Shown here: positions 12,701-15,700 of the stretch, piece after piece
Position numbering within the stretch: position 1 is the first letter of the stretch
Layout of the letters: every line of letters starts with the position of its first letter
Assembly: GCF_006345805.1 (NCBI RefSeq)
Contig: NC_043015.1
Coordinates: 46,314,001-46,378,000 of the forward strand
Length of the DNA: 64,000 nucleotides
Reading direction: 5' to 3'
Source: Octopus sinensis
Lineage: Eukaryota
Translations under genes and position numbers: made by a program
Notes under the pieces: generated by a model
The model's database searches: none
Seen by the model: only the letters and a program-made list of their open reading frames with translations
What the model was told of the DNA's origin: nothing

Positions 12701-15700
12701 TGGCCTGCTAGCTGGGGGATGCTTGCCTAGGCCTTGTAAACATATGAGAATTCTAGTGAAATAAATCCACTGATTACAAAAATAGAAATATTACATTTCT
12801 GAATATCTCAGAGAGATAAAAAAAGGAGCACTCCGTCGGTTGCGACGATGAGGGTCCCAGCTGATACGATCAACGGAACAGCTTGCTCGTGATATTTACG
12901 TGCAAGTGGCTGAGCATTCCACAGACACGTGTACCCTTAACGTAGTTCTCGAGGAGATTCAGCGTGACACACAGAATGTGACAAGGCTGGCCCTTTGAAA
13001 TACAGGTACAAGAGAAACAGGAAGAAAGAGCGAGAGAAAGTTGTGGTGAAAGAGTACAGCAGGGTTCACCCCCCCCCCTGCCGGAGCCTCGTGGAGCTTT
13101 AGGTGTATTCGCTCAATAAACACTCACGATGCCCGGTCTGGGAATCGAAACCGCGATCCTCCGACCGCTAGTCCGCTGTCCTAACCACTGGGCCATTGCG
13201 CCTCCTCAGAGAGATATAAGCAGTGGTGGGATTATTATTTATATATATTATGGTAACGAACCGGTAGAATCGTTAGCACACAGAACAAAATTTCAGATTG
13301 ATTTGATTCAAACCAACACGACAATTGAGCCTAAAATTATCAGACATCCATAATTCAACGCAACATCAACGATTGTTGGTTTGTTTACTTCCCCGTAAAT
13401 TAGCGGCTCGGTAAAAAAAGGTAACGATAGAACAAGTGCCAGACTTTCAAAAAAAAAATGTAAGTACTGGAGCCGATTTGTTCGACTAAAACACTTAAAA
13501 AAAAAGCAATGCCCCAGCATGGCCGCAATTTAATGACTGTAACACAGGTAGCTTTACTCCTGTTCTAAACAGGATCTGCGAGATATTTGTCTTTTGTATA
13601 ACGGACTCTTCTATATTGTAAGGTAGGGGGTAAAGACAGGTAACTTCAAGGGGATTGAGAGGCAGGGTTTATAGCTATCTTACCTGATTATACCGGAAAA
13701 TGCAAACATCTCAGCCAGAAGATACGAGAGGAAAGCGAGAGAAAAGATGGTCAGTGGTTCCAACACTGCAAGAGAAATAACACGCATCAGTATATTTAAA
13801 TGATACATAAAGATATACAATACATACATGCATGTATGTAATTATATAATTTACAGGTGATGCACATACATTTAATTATACACATGTTCAAAGACGATCA
13901 CCATCTCTCCATGTGATCAGTTTTAAAAAAATTGCTAAGGTAAGATATTTTTCTTAGCATGAAACCAATGGTAGCCTTAATACACAAATGAAGGATCTTT
14001 ATCCTCCAATGCGGTGTTGAGCACTTATTCACATTGTTCGTCATTTACGTGTGTATTACACACACACACACACACACACACACACACACACACACACACA
14101 CACACACACACATACACACACACACACACACACACACACACAGAGGAAGTTAATTATTATATGCCCAGTCAAATTCATTGCTGCTCTAATGTTTAAAGTG
14201 TGTTTTGTTTTTCAGATATATGATATAGTTGAAATTTACAAAAAAACCAAAAACAATAACAAAAGATGAAGATAGGTGTATAAACAACAAACAGGTGTGT
14301 GTATATATATATATATATATATTATATATATATAACGGGAAGCTTATGAAAATAGACAAAAGACGGTAGGTAAATAATTACGTAAGTACGTAGGCAGGTG
14401 CATGAATATATCTGAACATATATATATATATATATAATATATATTATATATATATATATATATATATATATTACCGGAGTAAACACATAAATGTGAAACA
14501 CGGTGGAAAAAGAGTAGTACTCAAATACCAGAGGTAGAGTAATATGCTTTATTTAAAAGCAGCAGAAATTTAACAAAGCTGTTACTCGGAGTTTCACGTT
14601 CCCCGTTCGTCGGACAGTTTTAACAAAACTTTTGTTCAATTTCTGCTGCTTTAAAATAAAGTATATATATATATTATATATATATATATATATATATATA
14701 TATATATATATATATAGTATATGTATATGTATATATATATATATATGTGTATGTGTGTGTGTGTGTGTGTGGTATGGGTGTGTGTGTGTGTGTGTGTAGT
14801 GTGTGTTTGCATCTGTCCTCCAACCGCTTGGTAACCGCTGTCGGTTTGTATACTTCCCCGTAAATTAGCGGCTCGGTAAAAAAAGGTAGCGATAGAACAA
14901 ATGCCAGACTTTTTTTTTTTTTAAATGTAAGTACTGGAGCCGATTTGTTCGACTAAAACACTTAAAAAAAGTAATGCCCCAACATGGCCGCAATTTAATG
15001 ACTGTAACAAGTAAATTTTTTAAAATGGTACCCCATAATCATTTTCATACATTGAAACGTGCAATAATTTATTCAAAATGGTGGCACCCGAAACCCCTAT
15101 TTCATCGCATCTCTTACATTTCAGGCAGAGTCATAAAGATTACTCTCTTTTCACTCTCTCTCTTTTACTTGTTTCAGTCATTTGACTGCGGCCATGCTGG
15201 AGCACCGCCTTTAATCGAGCAACTCGACCCCGGGACTTATTCTTTTGTAAGCCCAGTACTTATTCTATCGGTCACTTTTGCCGAACTGCTAAGTCATGGG
15301 GGACATAAACACACCAGCATCGGTTGTCAAGCAATGCTAGGGGGACAAACACAGACACACAAACACACGCAAGCATATATATATATATATATACATATAC
15401 GACGGGCTTCTTTCAGTTTCCGTCTACCAAATCCACTCACAAGGCTTTGGTTGGCCTGAGGCTATAGTAGAAGACACTTGCCCAAGATGCCACGCAGTGG
15501 GACTGAACCCGGAACCATATGGTTGGTGAGCAAGCTACTTACCACACAACCACTCATGCGCTTATTACGTCAATTTTCTGCTCATTTTATTTATATATTT
15601 TTAATTTATAAGAAGACAAATTAGATTTTTTGTTTTTACATAAATTTCTTTCTTTGCAATGGTGTTAAACGAGTTGAAATTGTTAATATCATATTAATTT

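Follow-up and report, generated by a model that had tools for sequence, protein, structure and literature searches.

A type I hammerhead-like motif with C at core position 4, probably left by a retroelement insertion, in an Octopus Na+/H+ exchanger intron

Does a hammerhead-like motif lying within an intron of an Octopus Na+/H+ exchanger (NHE) gene cut the transcript that carries it, or does it mark something that was once inserted there? The motif lies in a 64,000-nucleotide stretch of Octopus sinensis DNA (contig NC_043015.1, positions 46,314,001 to 46,378,000, forward strand), which we refer to here as the window and in whose own numbering all positions are given. The reading that we favor, at a probability of about 65%, is a fossil insertion, in which a short non-autonomous retroelement would have entered a (TA)n microsatellite in the exchanger intron.

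The motif and its host intron

From 14617 to 14579 the minus strand reads CTGT-CCGACGA-ACG(GGGAA)CGT-GAAA-C(TCCGA)G-TA-ACAG, exactly the letters given in the original prediction, which had recognized every element of a type I hammerhead except for a C in place of the conserved U4. The descriptor bears this out: the type I topology is satisfied (helix I open, helices II and III closed as hairpins, cleavage 3' of helix III). Of the 11 fixed core positions (C3 U4 G5 A6 N7 G8 A9, G12 A13 A14, A15.1-U16.1, H17), 10 are present, and only U4 fails, in a box that reads CCGACGA. Helix I consists of 4 bp (CUGU/ACAG), helix II of 3 bp starting with A-U (ACG/CGU, loop GGGAA), and helix III of 2 bp (A-U and C-G) closed by a near-palindromic UCCGA loop; the cleavage site is GUA, with a predicted cut after 14583. 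In a dimer, ACUC-C-GAGU is predicted to form 4+4 bp around a C.C mismatch, the palindrome being interrupted. The features of this locus and of the related motifs are collected in Table 1.

Exons of the Na+/H+ exchanger lie on the minus strand, and the motif falls in the 4.8-kb intron between exons 18715-18584 and 13781-13686, downstream of at least six coding exons; these flanking exons confirm that the motif had rightly been placed in an NHE intron, in sense orientation. In a protein search with the concatenated NHE exons, the best matches, from leech, crab, Lingula and Elysia, reached no more than 49-56% identity, and for this reason neither an Octopus NHE orthologue nor an orthologous intron was recovered. 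The locus itself is of little weight: it is a further hammerhead-like relic of a retroelement within an intron, and we saw no sign of an effect on the NHE transcript.

The motif shares with RF00163 type I hammerheads the helix order I-II-III, the GAAA box, the A15.1-U16.1 pair, the NUH site and the residues C3, G5, A6, G8 and A9; unlike them, it carries C for U4, matches no covariance model (at gathering score or at E<=10) and has a different fold favored thermodynamically. A scan of the whole window at Rfam gathering scores gave no hammerhead match (RF00163, clan CL00010). At E<=10, no hammerhead model matched positions 14500-14700, where sub-threshold miRNA-like hairpin noise alone appeared, and none matched the related motifs in the window (five motifs in all).

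Table 1. Features of the motif-bearing locus and of related motifs in the window (window coordinates).
Feature	Position	Strand	Details
Hammerhead-like motif, type I	14579..14617	minus	Sequence, descriptor and chance estimates
Inverted-repeat arm, preceding the motif (5', minus-strand sense)	14631..14666		Inverted copy of the 36 nt following the motif
Inverted-repeat arm, immediately following the motif (3', minus-strand sense)	14542..14577		With 14578, prolongs helix I
Spacer, 13 nt (AGUUUUGUUAAAA), upstream arm to helix I	14618..14630	minus	Partly pairs with 14570-14578 in the predicted hairpin
Unique stretch, 71 nt, hairpin to next (TA)n tract	14471..14541	minus	No other copy in the window
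(TA)n tracts abutting the hairpin	14662..14716		With 14445-14470, bracket the 193-nt unique insert 14474-14666
Two ~214-nt copies of element X, head-to-head foldback	25982..26403	minus	205-nt arms (93%), 12 nt between
Partial motif	30092..30133	plus	GUAC-CCGAAGA-GACCC(auugc)GGGUC-GAAAC...; cleavage triplet not intact
Solo copy of element X	44472..44728	minus	Copy 44685-44472, 94% identical to 26200-25987
S/F-family motif, SINE-like	55831..55865	plus	GUUU-CCGACGA-aGAGC(ucc)GCUC-GAAA-CG-UU-AAAC; minimal hammerhead, helix III loop absent

Recurrence of the C4 core

We considered that the locus could be an inverted repeat of the usual intronic kind, with a loop that fits a relaxed hammerhead descriptor by coincidence. 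One core mismatch is required, the three stems, of 4, 3 and 2 bp, are minimal, the Rfam hammerhead models fail to match even at E<=10, the site was picked after the fact from a large scan, and relaxed cores are known to inflate false positives, as Perreault et al. warned (PMC3088659). Against this, the descriptor allowing any single core mismatch is expected to match only 0.015 times per window in dinucleotide shuffles and 0.029 times on average for 720 decoys with permuted cores applied to the actual sequence, and ~18-fold less often for C4 specifically; we observed 3 matches (vs. 0.015-0.029). With one helix mismatch also allowed, 4 matches were found (vs. a decoy mean of 0.18). The string CCGANGA-N8-20-GAAAC occurs 6 times in the window (vs. 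0.09 expected), and its canonical CTGANGA form once (vs. 0.18 expected). Among the 18 single-base core variants, C4 alone stands out in the window: under the full descriptor, which holds the rest of the core fixed and asks for all three helices, four sites have N4=C, three complete C4 sites beyond the one in the NHE intron, and none has N4=U, A or G. No canonical-core hammerhead was found in the window by the descriptor; the canonical-box site at 63396-63372 was rejected, as it lacks helix II and is an ordinary inverted repeat. The near-identity of helix III to that of a repeat described below (element X) also speaks against coincidence, and we regard the chance account of the locus as improbable; the motif at 14579-14617 is not a chance match. 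These comparisons rest on descriptors with decoy controls rather than on a covariance model, because a MAFFT alignment of the five motifs misplaced the boxes.

Element X is present in the window in three copies at 93-94% identity. Two of them form a foldback with a motif at its center, at 26195-26151 (CACACG-CCGAUGA-cGGGU(caau)AUUCa-GAAA-C(ucga)G-UC-CGUGUG); the solo copy carries its motif at 44680-44636 with helix II intact (GGGU/ACCC) and has an inverted 20-nt internal segment upstream (44709-44728 with 44587-44606) that encloses the motif. Helix III of element X is the perfect palindrome ACUCGAGU and is near-identical to that of the intronic motif (GAAACUC[C]GAGU). No candidates for further copies came from a protein search in which the antisense frame of element X served as query.

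The S/F family is SINE-like, ends in (TA)n and has at least six copies in the window, including a decayed sister of the 55831-55865 motif at 42718-42696 on the minus strand; it is also found in two O. vulgaris loci (L004 and L006). A tRNA-derived SINE head behind GGNUCGAAAC-like strings was rejected, since ARAGORN found no tRNA-like gene in the window. The partial motif is set in 187 nt of unique sequence with a (TA)n tract on either side.

Across these C4 lineages only N7 varies within the box (C, U, C, A), helix II covaries (ACG/CGU, GGGU/ACCC, GAGC/GCUC, GACCC/GGGUC), helix I is different in each, and the cleavage sites are GUA, GUC and GUU. Judged from the sequences, this pattern of conservation is that of a hammerhead. 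It may be asked whether Octopus has a hammerhead lineage with the consensus CCGANGA, selected across several unrelated short retroelements and still self-cleaving, perhaps only as dimers, with caging in a hairpin controlling cleavage. Selection is suggested because the rest of the core is invariant, N7 is free and the helices covary; we give a lineage that remains active in this way a low but appreciable probability.

The enclosing hairpin and its predicted folding

The motif is enclosed by an inverted repeat of 36 nt (14542-14577 with 14631-14666) that is 92% complementary, with three mismatches (14546, 14555 and 14571). The repeat had been described as 24 bp with one mismatch; that segment is real, its mismatch falling at 14555, but the second arm is off by one (14638-14661, not 14639-14662) and the length falls short of the actual extent. 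The hairpin was likewise said to stand between (TA)n tracts, which holds on the high-coordinate side, where a tract abuts it, but not on the other, where the tract lies 71 nt away; the unique stretch between could belong to the inserted unit as its 3' portion. Tracts of (TA)n of at least 12 bp number 109 in the window (3.9% of its bases), and each of three solo motif-bearing stretches lies between such tracts (14474-14666, 29996-30182 and 33168-33446). No target-site duplication can be read at the 14474-14666 insert because (TA)n stands on both sides.

The predicted hairpin has a stem of ~40 bp (MFE -38.8 kcal/mol, z = -6), and rod-like folding of the other motif-bearing inserts is not significant (z = -0.3 and -1.9). 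Helix I of the motif runs into the 36-bp repeat as a plain stem with one A.C mismatch, in which inspection revealed no loop or bulge able to contact loop II, a contact on which hammerhead activity at physiological Mg2+ depends. Taken alone, the hammerhead pairs come to 0.0 kcal/mol, vs. -6.6 for a competing CGGGG/CUCCG helix. Enforcing the hammerhead inside the 125-nt hairpin costs 7.2 kcal/mol above the MFE in the nearest-neighbor model, and the predicted occupancy of the hammerhead fold within the hairpin is ~1e-6.

These predictions bear on the proposal of an active hammerhead that would cut the NHE pre-mRNA during transcription, its fold stabilized by the outer hairpin in lieu of tertiary contacts. 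Conserved intronic sense-strand hammerheads are known in amniotes, and we counted them in favor of this proposal, together with the sense-strand position in the intron, the 10 of 11 core positions and the cleavable GUA site. A natural viroid hammerhead with U4C retains in vivo activity sufficient for infectivity (Ambros & Flores 1998, as cited in PMC3088659), which indicates that C4 need not abolish function in vivo; the viroid form has full helices, tertiary contacts and selection by replication, unlike the present minimal motif in an animal genome. Against the proposal, U4C 'considerably decreases activity in vitro' (PMC3088659), mutations of the CUGA U-turn lead to low activity (PMC9901934), and minimal hammerheads of the type found in Penelope-like elements (PLEs) cleave poorly in vitro even when dimeric (PMC4209133). 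Given the ~7 kcal/mol cost of the fold, a 3-bp helix II starting with A-U, a dimer-type helix III that needs a partner where one copy exists, and the lack of an Rfam match, the models make cleavage of the NHE intron by this motif unlikely, and a ribozyme still active in this intron appears to us highly improbable. Nor does the hairpin look like a substitute for tertiary contacts: it would be better read as an inverted duplication made at the time of insertion.

Alternatively, the hairpin itself could be functional, as a substrate for ADAR editing or for small RNAs in the NHE pre-mRNA, its tip being irrelevant. Cephalopods edit their RNA heavily at double-stranded structures, which we counted in favor of such a role alongside the long, stable stem and its weak similarity to mir-249 (24 bits) and MIR1435 (27.7 bits). 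Both scores, however, are far below the gathering scores, the insertion mechanism set out below would account for the hairpin, and sub-threshold miRNA-like matches are commonly obtained with any inverted repeat, a point made for the giant squid genome (PMC6962438); a functional hairpin is thus, on these predictions, very improbable.

Origin of the motif-bearing hairpin

Inverted termini raise the question of whether the locus is a MITE or foldback element, Tc1/mariner-like with a TA target, in which the 36-bp arms would be transposase-bound TIRs and the center a passenger, possibly captured from a retroelement. The total of ~125 bp, the 36-nt inverted termini, TA on both flanks and the intronic position are all MITE-like; the strong stability of the hairpin also speaks for such an element, as do its weak miRNA-model matches, which are typical of MITE-like hairpins. 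Within a (TA)n tract, however, TA flanks are uninformative, and no other copy was found in the 64 kb of the window or in 62 kb of further Octopus DNA, a sample too small to exclude a family. Moreover, the same motif with the same helix III is found in element X both solo (one-armed) and head-to-head, and the X foldback is not a TIR structure because its 'arms' are whole copies with their 3' ends outward. The inverted-duplication architecture of 14542-14666 thus recurs at 25982-26403 and 44587-44728, in elements without TIRs, and the inverted segments at the three loci measure 36, 205 and 20 nt, as expected of integration accidents rather than of fixed TIRs. We therefore consider a MITE unlikely.

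A retroelement insertion finds its closest counterpart among PLEs. Lunse and colleagues are said to have dealt in 2017 with minimal, dimer-type hammerheads of these elements. Cervera & de la Pena (2014, PMC4209133) describe metazoan type I and PLE hammerheads as working in dimeric form, their helix III being reduced to 1-2 bp and closed by a small palindromic loop. Microsatellites, (TA)n among them, are favored targets of PLEs, which leave behind inverted copies truncated at the 5' end (PMC8557442), and in vitro a PLE enzyme extends the two strands of its target (PMC11167929). The motif resembles the minimal PLE hammerheads in its type I form, 4-bp helix I, helix III of 1-2 bp and near-palindromic loop, and in its setting of scattered, mostly single and heterogeneous copies, microsatellite targets and inverted partial copies (PMC8557442). 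At 14474-14666, (TA)n bracketing is combined with a 36-nt inverted partial copy, the signature of a PLE insertion. The differences are the C4 core, a helix II of 3 bp (vs. 6-8 bp in PLEs), the C.C-interrupted palindrome, and the absence of a tandem copy and of a PLE frame or pseudo-LTR nearby; inspection by eye of the open reading frames listed for the window revealed neither a PLE reverse transcriptase nor a GIY-YIG frame. The PLE link drawn in the original prediction remains the best lead, in that the C4 motif recurs in repeat families and the (TA)n and inverted copy fit, although no PLE was found in the window, and 14542-14666 is a possible shortened or non-autonomous PLE copy.

Non-LTR retrozymes, which are tandem repeats of 150-450 bp with type I hammerheads and circular RNAs, offer a second comparison, and their vertebrate members are reportedly depleted from introns (PMC7229834; bioRxiv 10.64898/2026.07.22.740005). 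The locus is like them in its AT-rich 193-nt unit between (TA)n tracts, weak helix III, strongly self-paired RNA and presence in a mollusc. It is unlike them in having no head-to-tail tandem or direct repeat, no canonical contacts between loops I and II, and a C4 core; as a single copy rather than a tandem, 14542-14666 cannot yield a circle. Element X carries its motif at its 5' end; in a self-processed retrozyme monomer the motif would be placed elsewhere, and this observation counts against our preferred reading.

No further copy of the 14542-14666 element was found in the window with mismatch patterns or sensitive blastn, and neither it nor element X was found in ~62 kb of unique Octopus DNA from four loci retrieved through LINE proteins (L004-L007), in which S-family copies are present and the C4 motif is absent. 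Its status as a member of a repeat family is argued by analogy with X and S/F because a second copy was not found. A metagenome scan with both arm halves gave three matches, all to unrelated repeats, and viral contigs contained no match to a 23-mer or to the degenerate C4 motif. Three matches to the C4 motif in prokaryotic genomes were rejected as chance: they are GC-rich, have G at position 17 and lack helix I.

How could a retroelement insertion have produced this structure? The RNA of the element would have borne a type I, dimer-type hammerhead module near its 5' end, with C rather than U at core position 4, as in several repeat lineages of the Octopus genome. In the life cycle of the element, this module may have processed multimeric or read-through transcripts, two copies pairing through the palindromic helix III. 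The hairpin would be a by-product of integration: the 36 nt that lie downstream of the motif would have been copied again upstream of it, in inverted orientation. Such a copy could have arisen through priming on both target strands, template switching or snap-back, as described for PLEs. Three points are our inference: the insertion was the work of a PLE-type enzyme, the ancestral module had catalytic activity, and the present copy is inert. This copy is single, has C4 in its core and 3 bp in helix II, and is locked at the tip of the ~40-bp stem; on the predicted energetics it most probably does not cleave, and the intron transcript would simply form a long hairpin.

The useful result is one of recurrence, and what novelty there is, of a mild degree, lies in the C4 core: each complete hammerhead-like motif in the window has C4, in at least three unrelated repeat lineages. 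Should the pattern hold genome-wide and C4 forms cleave, the accepted core consensus would be relaxed, and CUGANGA descriptors and Rfam models, which miss all of these motifs, would under-count cephalopod ribozymes. If C4 forms do not cleave, retroelements would be documented as spreading with a dead ribozyme module, which bears on whether transposition needs PLE hammerheads (PMC11167929, PMC8557442). Were the reading of an Octopus CCGANGA lineage true, animal genomes would have yielded their first natural clade of U4C hammerheads.

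The hammerhead-like motif and its class

On the minus strand, 14579-14617 has the sequence CTGT-CCGACGA-ACG(GGGAA)CGT-GAAA-C(TCCGA)G-TA-ACAG and matches a type-I hammerhead descriptor, the sole departure among 11 fixed core positions being C for U4 (hereafter C4), which bears out the original prediction of a hammerhead-like sequence with a non-canonical CCGACGA core. With one core mismatch tolerated, a descriptor requiring A15.1-U16.1 and stems no shorter than 4, 3 and 1 bp matched the window three times (vs. 0.015 expected from 200 dinucleotide shuffles, and a mean of 0.029 for 720 permuted-core decoys on the real sequence), and the true core was the single top-scoring pattern. 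When one helix mismatch was also allowed, we found four matches (vs. a decoy mean of 0.18); the fourth, at 26189, had the same C4 box as 14579-14617 and a nearly identical helix III, and we therefore tested the C4 box directly. CCGANGA-N8-20-GAAAC occurred six times in the window (vs. 0.09 expected), and the canonical CTGANGA form once (vs. 0.18 expected); that one site was examined and is not a hammerhead. Among 18 single-base box variants, C4 alone stood out. With the full descriptor and an otherwise perfect core, N4=C gave four sites (14613-, 26189-, 44674- and 55835+), while U, A or G at this position gave none in the whole window; the motif is therefore real, a member of a class and no chance match. 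Rfam hammerhead models matched neither it nor any of the related motifs at E<=10.

Between lineages, only the free position N7 of the box varies (C, U, C, A), helix II covaries (ACG/CGU, GGGU/ACCC, GAGC/GCUC, GACCC/GGGUC), helix I is distinct in every lineage, and the cleavage triplet is GUA, GUC or GUU. Conservation of this kind characterises a hammerhead.

Repeat families carrying the motif

Sites 26189 and 44674 belong to a repeat of ~214 nt, here called X, that starts with CACACG-CCGAUGA-c-GGGU(caau)ACCC-a-GAAA-C(ucga)G-UC-CGUGUG, with a helix I of 6 bp, a helix II of 4 bp and a helix III of 2 bp with a palindromic tetraloop. Its architecture is that published for metazoan type-I hammerheads (PMC4209133), from which it departs by C4 and by a basal C.A pair in helix II. 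In the X foldback, which lies on the sense strand of an intron of the Na+/H+ exchanger (NHE) gene with the C4 motif at its centre, the arms differ at 15 positions (13 transitions and two transversions). A protein database search with the X reading frame found nothing.

Site 55835 falls within a SINE-like family, S/F, which is represented at least six times in the window, occurs further in O. vulgaris loci and terminates in (TA)n or (CATA)n. The S/F motif at this site, GUUU-CCGACGA-a-GAGC(ucc)GCUC-GAAA-CG-UU-AAAC, has the minimal form of hammerheads in Penelope-like elements (PLEs). Subfamily cores differ (CCGACGA, CTGACGA in sister copy F3 and CTGTNGA in subtype D), and the GAGC/GCUC helix and the GAAACGU string are constant throughout. 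The single U4 copy of the F family shows CpG decay elsewhere in its sequence, as a C4 ancestor would allow, although the window as a whole is only weakly depleted in CpG (observed/expected 0.90). ARAGORN found no tRNA-like gene, which rules out tRNA-derived SINE heads as the source of the motifs. In ~62 kb of unique DNA from four other Octopus loci, S copies were present and the C4 motif was absent. The LINE fragments (see table) and the repeats of the window, which share 85-96% identity with loci of O. vulgaris and O. sinensis, place the DNA in Octopus. Of the U4 matches (see table), that at 6972-7011 may be a chance resemblance.

Motif-bearing repeats and other features (window positions unless a locus is named)
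Feature	Coordinates	Details
X, solo copy	44685-44472	
X, head-to-head foldback	25982-26403	two copies; 205-nt arms at 93%; 12-nt centre; 3' ends outward
S/F family, window	55757-56040, 42575-42795, 53620-53901, 7493-7870, 30230-30500, 32600-32810, 38325-38500	
S/F family, other Octopus loci	L004 12915-13056; L006 15185-15342	
Fifth motif, partial	30092-30133	5-bp helix II; within 187 nt of unique sequence flanked by (TA)n tracts
One-mismatch hammerhead-like match, U4, CUGAUGG	33296-33337 (-)	near-palindromic helix III; within 279 nt of unique sequence flanked by (TA)n tracts
One-mismatch hammerhead-like match, U4, CUGAAAA	6972-7011 (-)	near-palindromic helix III; ~65 nt upstream of NHE 3' splice site
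LINE reverse transcriptase fragments (C-terminal part)	4252-4695 and 8573-8899 (-)	in NHE introns; identity to annotated proteins of O. vulgaris 92-94%

Origin of the enclosing hairpin

The motif had been described as enclosed by a 24-bp inverted repeat between (TA)n tracts. The repeat exists, but it is 36 nt long (14542-14577 with 14631-14666, 92%, three mismatches), and 14547-14570 pairs with 14638-14661 rather than 14639-14662. Similarly, a (TA)n tract (14662-14716) does adjoin the high-coordinate end, but on the other side 71 nt of unique sequence separate the hairpin from the tract at 14445-14470, so that the two tracts are 193 nt of unique sequence apart.

At all three loci with an ACUC(C)GAGU helix III, the enclosing repeat is an inverted copy of the motif's own downstream sequence: 36 nt here, 20 nt at the solo X (44709-44728 with 44587-44606) and, in the X foldback, an entire copy. 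Because arm lengths vary by locus, they point to integration accidents rather than fixed terminal repeats. Moreover, each of three solo motif-bearing inserts is bracketed by (TA)n, which covers only 3.9% of the window. PLE insertions are biased toward microsatellites such as (TA)n, and can carry an inverted 5'-truncated copy beside the main copy and an optional tail of 30-40 bp (PMC8557442), a signature that these loci match; one PLE protein cleaves and extends both target strands in vitro (PMC11167929). Given the bracketing, the varying arms and this signature, we read the hairpin as an insertion scar. A MITE (miniature inverted-repeat DNA transposon) origin of the 14542-14666 element is conceivable; scans of public DNA for other copies returned unrelated or chance matches only. 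On the best explanation, the element is what remains of a short retroelement with a dimer-type U4C hammerhead; insertion into a (TA)n tract, accompanied by partial inverted duplication, would have given the present hairpin. Visual inspection of ORF listings of the window revealed no PLE reading frame; the motif-bearing elements would be non-autonomous or truncated, and we infer their link to PLEs.

Microsatellite load is extreme, with 14.4% of window bases in perfect repeats of 12 bp or more, among them 109 (TA)n tracts and long runs of (CATA)n, (TG)n, (AG)n and trinucleotides; a 100-N run at 50289-50388 is an assembly gap. In the introns of this cephalopod gene, 14542-14666, 25982-26403 and 44587-44728 form long double-stranded RNA structures, plausible candidate substrates for ADAR editing.

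Cleavage of the NHE intron

NHE exons lie on the minus strand of the window, and the homologues that they match carry PF00999; no Octopus orthologue of this NHE was found in the protein database. Exons 18715-18584 and 13781-13686 flank the motif, confirming its predicted intronic, sense-strand location. Adjoining the former exon, 18793-19331 holds C2H2 zinc-finger-like reading frames on both strands and matches O. sinensis locus L005 (15277-15822) at 95-96% as two adjoining pieces that run in opposite directions; within the window it showed no simple inverted repeat.

Co-transcriptional cleavage of this intron, also proposed, is unsupported. Nearest-neighbour modelling assigns 0.0 kcal/mol to the hammerhead pairs of the 39-mer (vs. 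-6.6 for a competing CGGGG/CUCCG helix), and within the 125-nt hairpin the best hammerhead-keeping structure reaches -32.9 kcal/mol (vs. an MFE of -40.1), giving a predicted hammerhead occupancy of ~1e-6. Helix II has only 3 bp, and helix III (2 bp with a 5-nt loop) is of the type requiring a second copy, none of which is present. The suggestion that the outer hairpin supplies tertiary stabilisation is likewise unsupported: helix I has no loop or bulge for contact with loop II, and the hairpin reads as a scar. In a comprehensive mutational scan, each of the single mutants of the CUGA U-turn was low in activity (PMC9901934); U4C 'considerably decreases activity in vitro', although a viroid with U4C is still infectious (PMC3088659). 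Minimal PLE hammerheads cleave poorly in vitro, dimers included (PMC4209133). The motif probably does not cut the NHE intron.

That animal retroelements and introns carry hammerheads is well known, and U4C has been known as a natural variant; the sole new element here is the recurrence of a C4 core in several Octopus repeat lineages.
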